From Zygophlyctis sp. KS116 (Eukaryota; Fungi; Chytridiomycota), in NCBI GenBank assembly GCA_054661495.1, contig BAAFSQ010000116.1, positions 1 through 29,409 of the forward strand: DNA of 29,409 bases, given 5' to 3'. This document shows positions 2,057 to 20,333 of the stretch, in pieces (position 1 is the stretch's first letter; every line of letters starts with the position of its first letter). The notes beneath the pieces were generated by a model. The model was given only the letters and a program-made list of their open reading frames with translations, was not told the DNA's origin and did no database searches. The position numbers were made by a program, and so were the translations under genes.

Positions 2057-2764
2057 TCAATTACAAACGGTTGACACTAAATGCTCCATCTTAATAATAT
2101 TTCCCAATGCATTAAGTGTCCAATCTCTAGACATATTGAGTCTCTGTTGGGTGATCTTGATCAATTTAACTGAAATATACTTTAACTGTTGGAAACTTTG
2201 TATTTCCTCATCTTCTATCAGCTGATTAAAACTCTGTCTAAGAGCTGCTAGTGATAAGTTCCCTGCATTTATCGAAAGTTTCATACGATCGTCAGAATTA
2301 TGAAAAATGTTTTTACTTGGAAGAAGAGAGTCTAGAGACAAACGTTTTGAATATCTACTTGAATCCATGAATAAGAAATCTAAGTGATTATAAAGCAATG
2401 AAAAGTCCTCATTTATATTCCATAACTGTTTGACGTTTCCCTTGATCTCTTCCCTAGAGTTTTTTAAAGCATCTATAGATATTTGGTCTGAAAACAACGA
2501 TCCGAATTCGATTATATGAGCGGAATACAATTCAAATTCCTTTAATTTAGACCGACAGTATCTTTCTCCGGACTTTAAAGACTCGAGTAATTGGTATTTC
2601 AATTCATCAACCTCTTCTGATCCATGAATCATCTTTGCCGTACATCCATCATTGAAATTTGGGCTTTTCATAGAAGCAAGTGAGGAATAGCCACTATCAC
2701 AGATTGTGGAGCCATTAATATGATTGATCGTCTTTGTCTTTCTTTGCTTTTGAAGTTTGGGCAT
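2057..2764 (-). CDS. Uncharacterised all-helical protein, dispersed intronless paralog A of the 15-19 kb family
   Basis: First ATG at 2764. Shares QLWNINEDFSLLYNHLDFLF, SINAG..LAALR and ITQQRLNMSRDW..ALGNI with the tandem genes. Confidence 0.75.
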   Translation of the reverse strand: MPKLQKQRKTKTINHINGSTICDSGYSSLASMKSPNFNDGCTAKMIHGSEEVDELKYQLLESLKSGERYCRSKLKEFELYSAHIIEFGSLFSDQISIDALKNSREEIKGNVKQLWNINEDFSLLYNHLDFLFMDSSRYSKRLSLDSLLPSKNIFHNSDDRMKLSINAGNLSLAALRQSFNQLIEDEEIQSFQQLKYISVKLIKITQQRLNMSRDWTLNALGNIIKMEHLVSTVCN

Positions 2765-13675: not shown

Positions 13676-13796
13676 TTACAGATTCTAAAGTTGCGAAGAC
13701 GAAATTCTTGCGATCGCACGAGACTAGGCGCACGGCTATGCTGACGGCTATGATGATGCCTGTGGTCGGTTGAGTGGTTTTACATTTTCAAAAATA
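13676..13796. promoter_or_regulatory. 121-nt divergent promoter region (lectin / ZnT)
   Basis: Lies between head-to-head ATGs. CpG-rich, with palindrome TGCGATCGCA and direct repeat ACGGCTATG(C/A)TGA x2. Confidence 0.55.
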
Positions 13797-15122
13797 ATGA
13801 AGAGAGAGAACAGACTCATATTCTTGGCTATATTTACCTTTTCTTACTTTTTGATAGAACTATTTGTAGGCTATGCTGCTGGTTCAATTGCTTTAATTGC
13901 AGATTCATTTCATATGCTCTCGGATGTTGCGTCAATTGTTGTTGCTTATTATGCTATAAAGTTGGCTGCTAGATCCACTGCAGGGCCTAGATATACTTAT
14001 GGATTACAAAGAGCAGAAGTTTTGGGAGCTCTGATGAATTCGGTTTCTTTAATTACTCTATGCATCACTATATTATTAGAGGCAATTCAAAGATTTTTTG
14101 AGCCGGTTAGAATAGAACGGCCTATTCTGGTTATAGCGGTTGGATCGGTTGGTCTTTTATTTAATTTAGTGGGAATGGGATTATTTCATGAACATGCGCA
14201 TCATGGACATTCTCACGGACATTCTCATGAGCACAGTCATCATGGACATTCTCATGAAGAACATGCTCATGATGGACATGCTCATGAAAAACATAGTCAT
14301 GTTAATAGTCCACACTCAAACTCACATTCTACTGCTGTAGATGATGATTTAGATGAGGCTTTTGGTACTCATGAGAGAGAAAGTTCGGCTGGATTGGAAT
14401 TATTTCCTACTACAGTTTTAGGAGCTGAAATTATTTCTTATGCTGAGAGAATGTCTACAGATCCTCTTGTAGATATGGAGAAACAGACGCTTGGAACTTT
14501 AAAAGATAATAAGAAGGAAGGGCATTTAAATGATCATGGAGTGTTTTTACATATCTTGGGAGATGCTTTAGGATCTTTGGGTGTCATAATATCTTCTGTA
14601 ATAATATTATTGGCAAAGGATGATTGGAAATATTATGCTGATCCTGTTATATCAGTTTTAATAACTCTAATGATTCTTATTAGTACAATTCCATTGGTAA
14701 AATCTGCTGCTTTTATACTTTTACAAGGTGATTTATATATTTTAAACAGAATAGGAGTTCCAACAAGTATTGAGATTGAAAATCTTAAATCAGAAATATG
14801 TCAGATTCCTGGCGTAGTTGGAATTCATGAATTACATATTTGGCAACTTTCTGATACTAAAGCAGTTGGCTCTGTTCATGTTATACTAAAAGAGCCAAAG
14901 ACTGGGGAACAAGTTTTGAGATCACACAGGGAAATTTCTGAAAATATCAAGAAAACTTTACATGGACATGGTATTCATTCAACTACTGTACAAACTGAAT
15001 ATGAAGATAAATCCGTTAAATTTCCTGAAGAGGAAGAACAATCTCCGGATGAGTATACATGTCTTTTGACTTGTCAATCTAACTCTTGTCAAACTCAGGT
15101 TTGCTGTCCTCAGAATAAATGA
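13797..15122 (+). CDS. CDF family zinc transporter (ZnT1/Zrc1/Cot1-like); in-frame 27-nt intron 14728-14754
   Basis: SIALIADSFHMLSD, TYGLQRAEVLGA, His-rich loop, GVFLHILGDALGS, HELHIWQL and GIHSTTVQ. Confidence 0.93.
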   Translation: MKRENRLIFLAIFTFSYFLIELFVGYAAGSIALIADSFHMLSDVASIVVAYYAIKLAARSTAGPRYTYGLQRAEVLGALMNSVSLITLCITILLEAIQRFFEPVRIERPILVIAVGSVGLLFNLVGMGLFHEHAHHGHSHGHSHEHSHHGHSHEEHAHDGHAHEKHSHVNSPHSNSHSTAVDDDLDEAFGTHERESSAGLELFPTTVLGAEIISYAERMSTDPLVDMEKQTLGTLKDNKKEGHLNDHGVFLHILGDALGSLGVIISSVIILLAKDDWKYYADPVISVLITLMILISTIPLVKSAAFILLQGDLYILNRIGVPTSIEIENLKSEICQIPGVVGIHELHIWQLSDTKAVGSVHVILKEPKTGEQVLRSHREISENIKKTLHGHGIHSTTVQTEYEDKSVKFPEEEEQSPDEYTCLLTCQSNSCQTQVCCPQNK

Positions 15123-15188: not shown

Positions 15189-16061
15189 TCATTCATCGTC
15201 AGTCAATATAGTCAAGTTCAATTCTAGTTTAGTTTGGAACAATTCAATATCACTGATGGCGCACATAACCCATTGAGACACCAACTTTTGACGTTTTTGA
15301 GAGATTTCAATGAGTGTGCAAGATATCTCCTTTACTTGACTCTTAAATTCCAAAATTAGCTGATCGCTAATAGGCATCTTCTTGGCTATATTTTTCGTAA
15401 TCAGAATACACATTTCTTTCAGGTCTTGTGCCGCAACCTGTCCAGACGTTATGTTTTCACGATAAATCTCCCCATAATACATATCACCACCATCTTTCTT
15501 GGGCTTATTAATCATCCCATTCAGCTAAATTTAAAAAATAAATACAGACAATACCATCTTCTTCATTTGAGCAAGCACATCAATCCCTACAGCTGAGTCT
15601 ATTTTGAATGTCGTCAGAGGCTTTGCAAAATCTACAAGACTATCATAAAGAGAGTCTAGATCATTATATATCGGAAGAAAATCTTGATTAGCTTTCCAAA
15701 GCGGCTTCATTAAAACCTGAAATGAATCCCAAGAAACGACCATGTTATCATGGAATATGATTTGTTCACTTTGAAAGACTTGAATTTTATCCTCTAGATC
15801 TAGACAAGCGTCAAGAAGTGATGCAGAGTTCCGATGAATTTTATCAATTGTACCAAACCATTTCCTCTTGACCTGTATTAGCTGTGATAGTATATCATTC
15901 ATGACTATGACTAGCCCAGCATTAACATGGGTATTTTCTGTTCGGACAAAATCAACCTTGTCCGAAGAATTGTTTGTACTATTGCTGATGGGAGTATAAC
16001 TTCCTTGATTTAAATAAGAATCTGACATTTTGAATTTCCTCTTGGCTGATTTATCCTTCAT
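15189..16061 (-). CDS. Uncharacterised helical protein, paralog B; phase-0 intron 15525-15554
   Basis: Spliced ORF carrying PLWKANQDF..IYNDLDSLYDSL and EISQKRQKLVSQWVMCAISDIE. Confidence 0.8.
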
Positions 16062-16197
16062 TGGATTAAATTGTTTATGTTTGGATTGATGTTTATCACT
16101 GGACTAGCGCATCGAAGGCGGCATTAAATAAAGAATCATTTACTCACCTCAGCCATAAATCAAAAGTTGATCTATTTATTCAGAGCATATTATAAAT

Positions 16198-16941
16198 CTA
16201 AAAACTTGGATCTAATTTACAATCCAAGTAATCAAGATCAGTAATCGCAATTTTGACCCATTTCTTTGCCAGCAAAAGTCTTTTTTCACTAATATCTAAT
16301 AATTCTCTACTGACAATCTTTACACTCTCTCTAAATTCTACAACACCATCTTCAGATTCTTGCTGTAAGAGTCTAAAACAATTTTCCTTTAATACAGCAA
16401 TCACCGATTTTCCAGCAAAGAATGAGTTTGCTAAACTTTGATTTAGACTAGATACATCTAATTTAGCTTTAATTTCCAACTTATTATTATTTTCTTTTAA
16501 AATTACATTTTGAGTAGTGAGTCTTGAGATTTTATATGCGTGACTAATACGTACTAAATCATTGTACAAGGTTGATAAATCATTGTAAACAGCTGTAATT
16601 TCCTGATTTAAATTCCATAGAGGATCCATGATTGTTGTTAAAACTTTAGGAATTGATTTTAATACAAATCGATTCTCGCAATAATCCTGTAAACTGCATT
16701 CTAAATTACTAGAATACTCTAGTAAAATGATTGACAGATTAAATATCTTTTCAGACTTTTGCAAAAACTCTTTTTTCCTCTCTTTAACATGATTAGATAA
16801 TTTATCTAAACGATCCCATTCAGACTTTGATATTTGTCGATAACTCCTCAGATAGGCCCTGTTGGCGCTAGAGCTCAAATCAATTATAAAAGAGTTTGGA
16901 TCAGACGTTTTCCTTTTGAAAGATTCTAATGCATTTGCCAT
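16198..16941 (-). CDS. Uncharacterised helical protein, paralog C; probable in-frame phase-0 intron 16480-16506
   Basis: Carries PLWNLNQEI..VYNDLSTLYNDL and DISEKRLLLAKKWVKIAITDLD. Confidence 0.8.
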   Translation of the reverse strand: MANALESFKRKTSDPNSFIIDLSSSANRAYLRSYRQISKSEWDRLDKLSNHVKERKKEFLQKSEKIFNLSIILLEYSSNLECSLQDYCENRFVLKSIPKVLTTIMDPLWNLNQEITAVYNDLSTLYNDLVRISHAYKISRLTTQNVILKENNNKLEIKAKLDVSSLNQSLANSFFAGKSVIAVLKENCFRLLQQESEDGVVEFRESVKIVSRELLDISEKRLLLAKKWVKIAITDLDYLDCKLDPSF

Positions 16942-17290
16942 TTTAATTGTTTACAATCCTTTATCCAAGAATTGGATTCGTAAAGACTGCAGATCCGTCC
17001 AACGGACACGTTTCTTACCATCGCGATATGCGCAAGTAAAGATTGACATGGCAATCGTAATCATGACCCGGAACTAGACTTTATAACGACTATTATTCTT
17101 ACATCATCTTAAATCTCTACACAATAGCAAAAATTTACAACTTTTTATTGGATGAAAACCAAATGACTCCAGAAACCAATAGCTGGCTTACTTAAATCTT
17201 TGCGATTAATCAGATCCAAAGACTAGATTATGCTATTAATGAAATACTATTTAGAAACATGTAGAATAAAACCAAAGTGCAATAACAGAC

Positions 17291-18078
17291 TCAAAGATCT
17301 GCAAGTGCATCTTCTGCCTTAAACTTCATGATTTCTACATTTGTTGTAGCTGTATTAATCCATTTCTTACAATCTTCTTGATGTTTTTGACTCTGAGATA
17401 AAGTCACTAAAACTATTTTCTTAATTTCTTCCAATAAATCTGAAGATTGAGAGATATGCAAAGACTTTAAAGTCATTAGTCTTGAACAATGTTCTTTTAA
17501 AGTAGCTACCATAGCTTTTCCAGCCTTTACAGATTCAAAAATCCTTAAATTTCCATTCCTAATAAAATTAGGACAATCTTTTAATTCTTTCAACTAGAAA
17601 TTAATGATTAAAGTTTTACTCTTGTAATTTGATTTACAATTTCCCAATCCTTTTCTTGTTGTTTTTCTGAACTTGTAAAAGATCTTAATTCAGTATATAA
17701 AAAATCCAATTCTCCAAAAAGAGATAGCATTTGATCATTCAAGTCCCATAAAGGTTCTAAAACCAAATCTAGTACTTTCCAGATTAAATCCAATCGACCT
17801 GAAGGAATTTTATTTAATTCCAGAATTTTGATTATATTTTGACAATGCATTGTGTATTCTAGAATTCTAATAGCAAATTCTGAATTTAATTCCATTTTTG
17901 AATTCCAATATTCAAGTAGAGTGTCCAAACGGTCAATTATCATTTCTAGATATATCATCTTGTTATCCAATTCATCTTTTAAATCTAAATGTCCAGAATC
18001 GGACATGATAACATCTAATCCTGTACAGTCCTGGTCTTGTCTGATGGTCTGTCTTGATAATACACTTGTAATTCTCAT
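17291..18078 (-). CDS. Uncharacterised helical protein, paralog D; phase-0 intron 17594-17619
   Basis: First in-frame ATG at 18078. Carries PLWDLNDQM..LFGELDFLYTEL and SQSQKHQEDCKKWINTATTNVE. Confidence 0.78.
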
Positions 18079-18410
18079 TTCAATCTTTTTAGAAATATAA
18101 CAGGAATGATCAGCGGCTGAAACTGTGTCCGACTTGGATCTTTGGTCCGTCACATCGCGCGATTCTGTAGATGGTCTCAATGATCGGAATGCGCCGATTC
18201 AATGGTCCATCGTTGATCTGGTTGGATTAGTAATTTTTACCTTTTCTAATCTTGTCTCATCTTGTCTTTTCTGGATTGCCTAGATTTTTTCAAAATTTTC
18301 AAGATTTTTTCTAGATTGTCTCCCAGTTCACTTGTTTTGAAAAATAAATTTTATAATAATCTTATGAAATATTTTATTGAAAGACAAGTTTTCAAATCTA
18401 CTAGACACTT

Positions 18411-19108
18411 TTAAAAGAATAGTCCTGATTTGAGTTGTGCATCATGATAACCATCTAATGGCATGGATTCAACGCGAAATTGCAGAAGAGCAATGTCTGA
18501 AATATTACTTAATCCCCATTTTTTAAGGATTTTAAGTCGCTGATCAGATACAAATAATAGTTCCTTGCTATAATTTGTAATTTCAGTCTTGTATTTAGAC
18601 ATTACAGGTTCAGAAAAATATTCTAAACTTTCAGAGCGATATACAAGATCTTCAAGTTTTGAAATTAGTAATGACCATTCGGAAATACTAGTAGTACAAG
18701 ACTCTGGAGCGTCTATTAATTTCCTGGATTCGAATATTTTACTAGATTCCTAAAATTTAGAATTATTTTAAATACTAGATGGAATTCAATCAAGGGATAA
18801 GATGCAATATGAGTAGTAGTAGACTGAAGACCACATTCTACCAAACGACTATACAATAGATTTATATGATTGTAAATAATCATTAAATCTTCATTCATGG
18901 CTAATATACAGTTATTGTTTTTTAGAATCTGTGATATAGATCCCAAGTATGTTTTTAGAGGGATATTTCCCATGGCGATGACTTTCAGTCCATGCTCTAG
19001 AATTATTTTTGAGACTAGAAATGTTGCTTCTATATCTTGAATCTTGTTCATATTATCTTGGGCCTTGTCCTGTAAATGGTTTAGTTGATGCAATAGTTTA
19101 GTGCTCAT
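18411..19108 (-). CDS. Uncharacterised helical protein, paralog E; phase-0 intron 18750-18775
   Basis: Carries ILAMNEDLMIIYNHINLLYSRL and FVSDQRLKILKKWGLSNISDIA. Removing the intron joins the two ORF-track pieces. Confidence 0.75.
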
Positions 19109-19404
19109 TAAAGTTTTTTGGTTTTTAAATGTTTGGACACTTGCCGATCAGGCCGATCAGTCAATCTTTTCAAGTCGATCTTTGGCGTCTGGCATCGTCT
19201 TTCGGCTGATTGGTCAATCCGGGATTTGCGGATTTGAGTCGGTTCATCGGGTTTCAAGGCATCTGATCTCCTGGATCCATTCGATTCTCTGGAAATCAAA
19301 ATTTTTACAGCTGGATCTAGATCTCTGAATGCAGGAGAATTTATAGATTATCTTTGAAACAAAAATTTTATTATAATAATCTTTTAATCATTTGCCTACA
19401 AGAA

Positions 19405-20333
19405 CTAGTATGCTGATTTACCAACAACTCGAATATCCAATCTCTGTCCTACAAAGTTACCTCTACTAATTACTTTAATTAAACTTACGGTGGGTCATAA
19501 TGACAGACCATGTATCTAGTATTTCTGTTATCGGCATAAGCACAACCTAATCTAACAGAAGAAGGCCAAGCCAACTAGATCTTTAAAAATATTAATATTA
19601 CCTGTGTAAAGTGGCCATAAGCACTAAAATCTCCTTCTCCAATCTTTTCGTTATTATATAAGCTGTATTCATTGAACCATGCATCAACTGCAGAAAAACA
19701 GCTGGGATTACCATTTGTGTTTGAATAAAGATTTTCACCAGATTTAGAATGTTTGAGTCCGAAATTCACATCCGCTAAATGTATTGCCCAATTATTGGCA
19801 TCTCTTGCCAACTCACTACTCCAGGAATAGCTACTGATTTTTGTTTTATCAGTAATTTTTTCCAACATTCCTCGGTACTTGTTGTGCTGATTTAAGCAGC
19901 CCCAAGCCCAGTTATTCCTATCTGTTCCGGCATTGCCAGTGTTTCCGGCATTGCCAGTGTTTCCAGTGTTTCCAGTGTTTCCAGTAGTGCCAGTGTTTCC
20001 AGTAGTGCCAGTGTTTCCAGTACCACCAGTGTTTCCAGTACCACCAGTGTTTCCAGTACCACCAGTATTACTAGTAGTCCCATTGGTAGTAGTATTACCA
20101 CCAACTCCAGGATTAGTTGTGTTATTGGTAGAGTTTGTTGAAGGACCATTGTCTATGGGTATCAAATCAAAGATTTGAGTTGCATCATTATAATTCTTTT
20201 GGAATTTAGCTCTCGGGGAATCCCAAGTGGCAGTAGATAAAATCAGTCCTATCATAGACAACAGGAGACAAACAATAAATGATATTATATATGGTTTCCA
20301 TTTTAGATTAATATGCTGTTTTAGCTGCAGCAT
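19405..20333 (-). CDS. Membrane-anchored CAP/PR-1 (SCP) domain protein with Gly-X-Y stalk; 2 introns
   Basis: N-terminal TM helix; CLNQHNKYR, GENL, GHFTQLAW, LGCA and VCHYDPPGNF. TAG at 19405-19407. Confidence 0.9.
19920..20063 (-). repeat. 9-nt-period coding repeat giving 16 consecutive Gly-X-Y triplets (GNT/GGT/GTT/GNA)
   Basis: Arrays of ccagtgttt, ccagtagtg and ccagtacca on the + strand. Confidence 0.95.

Follow-up and report, generated by a model that had tools for sequence, protein, structure and literature searches.

We analyzed a 29,409-nucleotide (nt) stretch of DNA from the chytrid Zygophlyctis sp. KS116, contig BAAFSQ010000116.1 (here C116) of assembly GCA_054661495.1, which is called the window throughout. 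An array of four genes occupies positions 15189–19108 of its minus strand, and the genes are labelled E, D, C and B in their order on that strand. The best explanation as a whole, which we consider probable, is that these are real short genes derived from the fungal DUF2408/UPF0662 family (PF10303), encoding proteins with a bundle fold that would play an adaptor-like role. The short subfamily is best described, from sequence comparison, as a lineage-specific offshoot of that known family and not as a new system. What is new is a short, single-unit, clade-restricted subfamily; the uncharacterised fungal parent family was known already. The assembly is AT-rich, eukaryotic and 12.7 Mb in size, in 1175 contigs.

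The preliminary description of this DNA, made from the letters of the window, had noted four minus-strand genes with shared protein blocks and a phase-0 intron between blocks 1 and 2. The genes were found at the positions given there, the quoted blocks occur verbatim in the translations, and an intron at that place is predicted from the sequence of all four. The shared blocks also reflect true paralogy. Pairwise BLAST connects all short members through collinear matches, and the identity among the short copies is only 19–31%. To guard against circularity, we built profiles for each half of the protein with one orthogroup left out and searched them against the 441 open reading frames (ORFs) of the window. 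The exons of B, D and E entered the searches and alignments separately, and C, A and F entered as continuous open frames. Profiles lacking B recovered B with E values of 1.5e-20 (N half) and 1.1e-14 (C half). The corresponding values were 2e-17 and 2.3e-19 for C, 1.9e-9 and 4.2e-10 for D, and 7.7e-10 and 5.5e-10 for E. Each array gene is thus recovered in both halves by profiles lacking its own orthogroup, which bears out the profile similarity expected by the preliminary description. Gene A, 13 kb from the array, was recovered in the same way at 3e-7 and 1.9e-6. It is the most diverged member on the contig and the fifth copy that was implied when "five spliced proteins" were mentioned (2764–2057). 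No further ORF of the window's 441 matched these profiles at E ≤ 10.

Six-frame profile searches of the whole assembly gave six short members, namely B–E, A and F. In the same searches exon 2 of E matched the C-half profile at E 3.5e-36. Trees built from the N half and the C half are concordant. They support each of the orthogroups B, C, D, E and F, all of which include sequences of other organisms. Gene A forms a solitary long branch, and the short genes group together against the long ones with support 84/95. The ortholog of gene A is P0046. The relatives outside this genome all come from environmental assemblies (Logan, ENA, JGI) and are represented by short contigs. When C and the family alignment served as queries in a word-indexed protein search, only sister-strain orthologs were found. 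The trees indicate that the short copies are old, diverged paralogs whose split predates the divergence of the sampled relatives. The concordant trees, together with a model of C containing four long helices, uphold the earlier view of the genes as old, diverged, all-helical paralogs.

The preliminary description recognised no named family. This no longer holds, since a family profile reaches PF10303 proteins and the intron site and a motif are common with long PF10303 paralogs of the same genome. The family alignment, A5, was searched exhaustively with HMMER against 1.84 billion representatives, and 29 proteins were returned. Besides orthologs, they include the long proteins P0063 (E 2.6e-10, profile positions 32–194 on residues 17–213) and P0005 (E 3e-8), both of which bear PF10303. 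The named PF10303 matches are all fungal, and those titled "UPF0662 protein" bear PF10303. P0071 and P0072, also reached in this search, were rejected as false positives; they are TPR proteins whose "A-x-I-Y-N-N-L-G..Y" repeats mimic block 1.

Three long PF10303 paralogs are present in the genome: G466 (468 amino acids (aa), contig C466), H14 (contig C14) and a third gene on contig C53. A six-frame genome search with PF10303, whose Pfam gathering score is 25 bits, found only these three. A genome search with C itself also reached G466 and H14. C matches G466 over 163 collinear residues with E 2.5e-8 by pairwise BLAST. By the same method B exon 1, C and D exon 1 match H14 with E 4e-9 to 5e-8. 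In the six-frame search of the genome the N-half profile reached the long paralogs on C14 and C466 at 3e-11 and 1e-7. H14 also has a 28-nt phase-0 intron at the same site as the short genes, between the block-1 helix and the "VDGKF...GQ...C" element. The cysteine of block 2 corresponds to a cysteine that is invariant or nearly so in DUF2408 alignments. B, C and D retain the G-K/Q...L-K-E-x-C motif that contains this cysteine; F retains the motif in part, and A and E have lost it. The "RVDGKF" element is discernible in the D group alone, as IRNGNL or IKDGNL.

From these alignments, the short proteins correspond to the N-terminal ~230 residues of the long DUF2408 paralogs in this genome. Each begins with a polar tail and a long N-terminal helix, followed by one DUF2408 unit and, as block 3, by the helix that opens the next unit. 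The DUF2408 unit itself consists of block 1 (a "P-L-W...Y-N-x-L..L-Y" helix), a degenerate "RVDGKF" loop and block 2 (a "G-K/Q...L-x-E-x-C" helix). Short and long forms have the same order of elements (N-terminal helix, "P-x-x...L..L" helix, loop, "G-Q/K...L..x-C" helix), and both are polar and all-helical without a membrane segment. They differ in size. The short forms have ~210–250 residues, comprising one unit and the opening helix of a second, whereas the long paralogs were modelled or read at ~440–620 residues, and G466 and P0063 contain three matched stretches. The "RVDGKF...IP.GQ" hairpin is degenerate or lost in the short forms. Unlike the long forms, the short ones were found only in environmental assemblies related to this genome. 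Each genome has six of them, and four to five of these lie in a cluster.

The fold was examined on a model of C made by AlphaFold2 from a 10-row alignment; the modelled sequence contains nine residues encoded by a likely intron. Helices were predicted at residues 39–88, 94–145, 163–193 and 197–243. The N-terminal tail and the loop 145–160, which houses the nine intron-encoded residues, were disordered. The model suggests, with moderate confidence, that the whole short protein is one antiparallel four-helix bundle about 45–50 residues long. In an exhaustive structural search it superposed on designed and generic four-helix bundles at Z 15.3–12 over 126–177 residues with a root-mean-square deviation (rmsd) of 2.1–3.2. 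By the search's own calibration, Z below about 13–14 is the background range for helical bundles. Designed bundles gave the best matches (Z 15.3), and the bundles of the FAT domain, the vinculin tail and the p130Cas C-terminal domain followed at Z ~12. The identity to these bundles is 5–14%, so that a common arrangement is seen and no evidence of kinship or function. FAT, the vinculin tail and the p130Cas C-terminal domain are protein-binding adaptor domains.

G466 was modelled as well (predicted local distance difference test score (pLDDT) 73). The model consists of helices, with small hairpins where "VDGKF" occurs, and Foldseek found no match for it in the PDB. Its first unit resembles three-helix-bundle repeats of the BAG, spectrin/plakin and syntaxin Habc kinds. 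Residues 100–189 match the BAG domains of AtBAG1, AtBAG4 and BAG1 at Z 11.2–11.6 (rmsd 1.9–3.4, 81–93 residues), and spectrin repeats match the first unit at Z about 10. The BAG1 sequence against the DUF2408 profile gave E 0.41. This resemblance of the modelled unit to BAG and spectrin lies below the helical background threshold and can be taken as a lead only. Sequence searches of the PDB with both profiles found no related solved structure.

The preliminary description had proposed a check of the fold, and the outcome was divided. The helical bundle is borne out by the C model, and the ClyA/Hbl-type fold is not supported, as Foldseek against the PDB gave nothing below E 0.01. The latter result bears on the proposal of a multi-component alpha-helical pore-forming system of the ClyA/Hbl/Nhe type. 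Like the tripartite alpha-pore-forming toxins of the ClyA family (Hbl, Nhe, AhlB, SmhB), the array consists of adjacent paralogous genes for all-helical proteins of a few hundred residues. Hbl-, AhlB-, SmhB- and MakA-type chains are found low in the Foldseek list of C (E 0.13–0.5), and HBL and HlyE clusters appear in the ESM Atlas feature list at 0.79–0.81. However, these scores are at background level. The template modelling (TM) score is about 0.26, and by the Atlas tool's own calibration shuffled proteins score 0.8 one-third of the time; the shape and feature searches of the Atlas yielded generic helical matches and nothing else. In the exhaustive search plain four-helix bundles rank first, and pore-former chains are missing from the top 50. 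In contrast to the toxins, the array proteins lack a hydrophobic head or tongue segment and a secretion signal or signal-peptide-like N-terminus, and they show no significant structural or sequence match. Across members the maximal 19-residue hydropathy is 1.41, under the usual level of a membrane segment, and no such segment was found, as had been stated. The genes also descend from a family of intracellular type in fungi. We therefore regard a pore-forming complex as highly improbable.

Short proteins derived from DUF2408 would be soluble cytosolic or nuclear protein-binding modules. By descent they would share the pathway of the full-length Cub1-like proteins, and could be specialised adaptors, or could compete or pair, as single units, with the long forms that have three. 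They would act independently or by pairing, either among themselves or with the long forms. Among the three long genes, the one on C53 gives the genome's best Pfam scores. It is more canonical and is likely the true Cub1-type ortholog, with G466 and H14 as diverged long paralogs. Several points weigh against the best explanation. PF10303 matches none of the B–E exons, A, F or the distant orthologs, even at E ≤ 1, and Pfam on the short genes gave nothing beyond sub-threshold noise. When the halves were compared by hhalign with a broad fungal DUF2408 alignment, which is Dikarya-dominated, the N half gave a probability of 56% (E 1e-4) and the C half 5.7% (E 7e-3). As this broad comparison is weak, the DUF2408 link rests on the lineage's own long paralogs. 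The C model is only moderately confident, with a mean pLDDT of 66 and a predicted TM score of 0.53. Saccharomyces cerevisiae Cub1 (YPL260W) is taken here to be the characterised member of UPF0662/PF10303, for which the names in the sources gave no confirmation. To our knowledge no molecular mechanism has been described for the parent family, and the functional part of the explanation is drawn from descent.

The gene models are collected in the table below. All predicted introns of B–E are GT...AG, phase 0 and placed between blocks 1 and 2. Gene C is a single open frame in the window despite its likely intron. The corresponding stretch of L009, a lake-metagenome scaffold of a 95.4%-identical relative (the sister strain), is 28 nt long and ends in a better TTTAG. 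The frame there is therefore preserved solely through splicing. The start of D was placed at the ATG at 18078 because the relative carries a 1-nt indel upstream of it, at 18168.

Positions of the array genes, related genes and flanking genes. Coordinates refer to the window (C116) unless another contig is given.
Feature	Coordinates	Strand	Description
Gene E exon 1	18776..19108	-	111 aa; N-terminal helices and block 1; from ORF and sequence
Gene E intron	18750..18775	-	26 nt, GT..AG, phase 0; unites two frames; predicted from sequence
Gene E exon 2	18411..18749	-	112 aa and stop; degenerate block 2, block 3
Gene D exon 1	17638..18078	-	147 aa
Gene D intron	17594..17637	-	44 nt, phase 0; identical in L009
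Gene D exon 2	17291..17593	-	100 aa and stop; IRNGNL...AGK...LKEHC unit, block 3
Gene C exon 1	16507..16941	-	145 aa
Gene C likely in-frame intron	16480..16506	-	27 nt, phase 0; 28 nt in L009, shifting the frame
Gene C exon 2	16198..16479	-	93 aa and stop; AGKSVIAVLKENC, block 3
Gene B exon 1	15555..16061	-	169 aa; alternative start ATG 16028
Gene B intron	15525..15554	-	30 nt, phase 0; contains an in-frame stop
Gene B exon 2	15189..15524	-	111 aa and stop; SGQVAAQDLKEMC, block 3
Gene A	2057..2764	-	fifth, most diverged member on the contig; one open frame
Gene F	contig C165		sixth short copy; six-frame profile search
Third DUF2408 gene	C53:48423-49636 (L029 1424-2637)	-	ORFs of 202 and 183 aa
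CAP-domain gene (PF00188)	19575..20333	-	upstream slot anchor, non-member; Pfam; synteny in L024, L025 and L027
Cation-efflux/zinc-transporter gene (PF01545, PF16916)	13770..15122	+	downstream slot anchor, convergent with B, non-member; Pfam

We considered whether the array is not four genes, being one long multi-unit gene with long introns or a set of decaying pseudogene copies. The long DUF2408 proteins are themselves multi-unit. The internal spacers, 335, 352 and 139 nt with the start codons as modelled here, are long for a compact genome. However, every unit starts with an ATG and a polar N-terminal tail and ends in an in-frame stop of its own, and L009 preserves all of these. The relatives hold 2–4 units as whole genes. 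Introns here and in H14 are 26–44 nt, about one-third to one-tenth of the spacer lengths. Compared with L009, the E-D and D-C spacers diverge at 0.05–0.07 per site, close to the array's rate at synonymous sites, and contain indels whose lengths are not divisible by three. Divergence is lower, at 0.022 per site, in the C-B spacer of 139 nt. The L009 exons of B–E show zero stops and zero frameshifts, and all exon indels are multiples of three. The sole frameshifting indel within any L009 gene model falls in the predicted intron of C. With dN/dS (the ratio of non-synonymous to synonymous substitution rates) below 1 and zero disruptions, a single gene or decaying copies have almost no probability. 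B, C, D and E are, as read from their sequences, four separate, intact protein-coding genes.

The end of B exon 1 (15555–15610; …SAVGIDVLAQMKKM) is similar to block 2 of exon 2 (SGQVAAQDLKEMC) and is conserved in the L026 ortholog of B. This may reflect a small duplication within the gene that is particular to the B group. Each long spacer has a relatively GC-rich block in AT-rich surroundings (18100–18230, 19150–19300 and 16990–17070), roughly 20–190 nt upstream of the next gene's ATG. A common upstream motif was sought across 12 upstream regions, and only AT-rich words recurred. An Rfam scan of the window gave no match.

To follow selection at the strain level, the array was compared with L009, a single strain pair. 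As calculated, dN/dS is 0.26 for B, 0.44 for C, 0.49 for D and 0.21 for E, and 0.32 for the array overall (42.5 synonymous and 56.5 non-synonymous changes). The neighbouring genes have dN/dS of 0.07–0.35. The array is under purifying selection, with a constraint towards the relaxed side of what is seen locally. In comparison with the more distant L024, the array genes have diverged more than most neighbours: D and C are 41–47% identical between the window and L024, most neighbours 62–81%, and one about 50%.

A self/non-self (incompatibility-type) or otherwise diversifying locus had been another suggestion. The low identity of the paralogs, the different copy numbers among relatives and the low identity of the orthologs to those of L024 would all suit such a locus. 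At the strain level, however, the dS of the array (0.05–0.10) is no higher than that of the flanks (0.06–0.13), the range of dN/dS, 0.21–0.49, indicates purifying selection, and hypervariable segments are absent between the array and L009. A diversifying locus of this kind is very doubtful. Of the two quantities that the preliminary description had named for a check, copy number in the slot is variable among relatives, and dN/dS points to purifying selection.

B–E lie between a CAP-domain gene and a cation-efflux gene. The transporter anchor is syntenic in L009, L024, L026, L028 and L030. The window and L009 both have E-D-C-B. L024 has D-C, with 66 nt separating C from the transporter, and L030 has E-D and then the transporter. 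The partial contigs show E-D and then the transporter (L028), CAP-E-D (L025), B adjoining the transporter (L026) and CAP-CAP-E (L027). Complete slots elsewhere were found on two contigs with two copies each, compared with four in this lineage. Gene order thus shows, as far as sequence can, that B–E occupy one conserved chromosomal slot, and that the presence of individual copies in it differs between genomes.

This variation bears on the proposal of an obligate heteromeric assembly built from the paralogs, for example a filament, scaffold or coiled bundle, with each orthogroup filling a distinct position. In its favour, the orthogroups are old and distinct and each is conserved, the genes lie together on one strand, and the long amphipathic helices of the C model would be apt for bundling. 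However, the same slot holds different subsets. L024 has D-C with no room for B, and in L030 the transporter follows E-D. The only contig read for a missing copy, in which B adjoins the transporter, belongs to a third relative. The variable slot content therefore makes an obligate four-part complex less likely, and we consider it unlikely.

The CAP gene encodes a hydrophobic N-terminal segment and a long "GNTG(G/T)TGNTG" repeat region rich in Gly, Thr and Asn, and it is tandemly duplicated in L027. The zinc-transporter gene has a long His-rich loop and a dN/dS of 0.35 against the sister strain, the highest of the neighbours checked.

The sixth short gene, F, is also linked to a long one. In L032 an HSP20 gene alone separates an F-type gene from a long gene that is 61% identical to G466. 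C165 ends inside the HSP20 gene (L002 2404–2472), and C466 begins with G466 (L004 26–1432). From the gene order of L032 and these contig ends, C165 and C466 probably adjoin. The linkage of F to the long gene would fit an origin of the short form through local duplication and truncation.

According to a Candida study (PMC11118716), the Cub1 ortholog is responsive to peroxide and influences proteasome activity. Work in yeast and Candida ties Cub1-like proteins to stress, proteasome function and DNA damage (PMC11118716, citing Firestone et al.). In the literature library that was searched, no text contained DUF2408, UPF0662, PF10303 or SPAC30C2.08, and of the 6 papers that mention YPL260W none was mechanistic. 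The title of Firestone et al. adds the suppression of a copper-sensitive phenotype. We know of no structure or mechanism for DUF2408/UPF0662, a pan-fungal family.

It is possible, at a rather low probability, that the short proteins, with their single unit, serve specifically to partner or antagonise the Cub1-like proteins with three units, and act through mixed helical bundles formed among themselves or with the long forms. If so, they would form a lineage-specific regulatory layer on a pathway linked to stress and the proteasome. In that case the cluster, conserved yet variable, would amount to a dissection of the DUF2408 unit made by nature and would offer a way into the function of Cub1. 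Apart from what the long and short copies reveal about the family, the array is an unremarkable example of birth and death within a gene family, in a fungal clade that has been sampled little. The three long and six minimal one-unit copies appear to reveal the part of DUF2408 that can stand alone, namely unit 1 together with the N-terminal helix and one further helix. This part may be a small foldable fragment suited to structural and binding studies.

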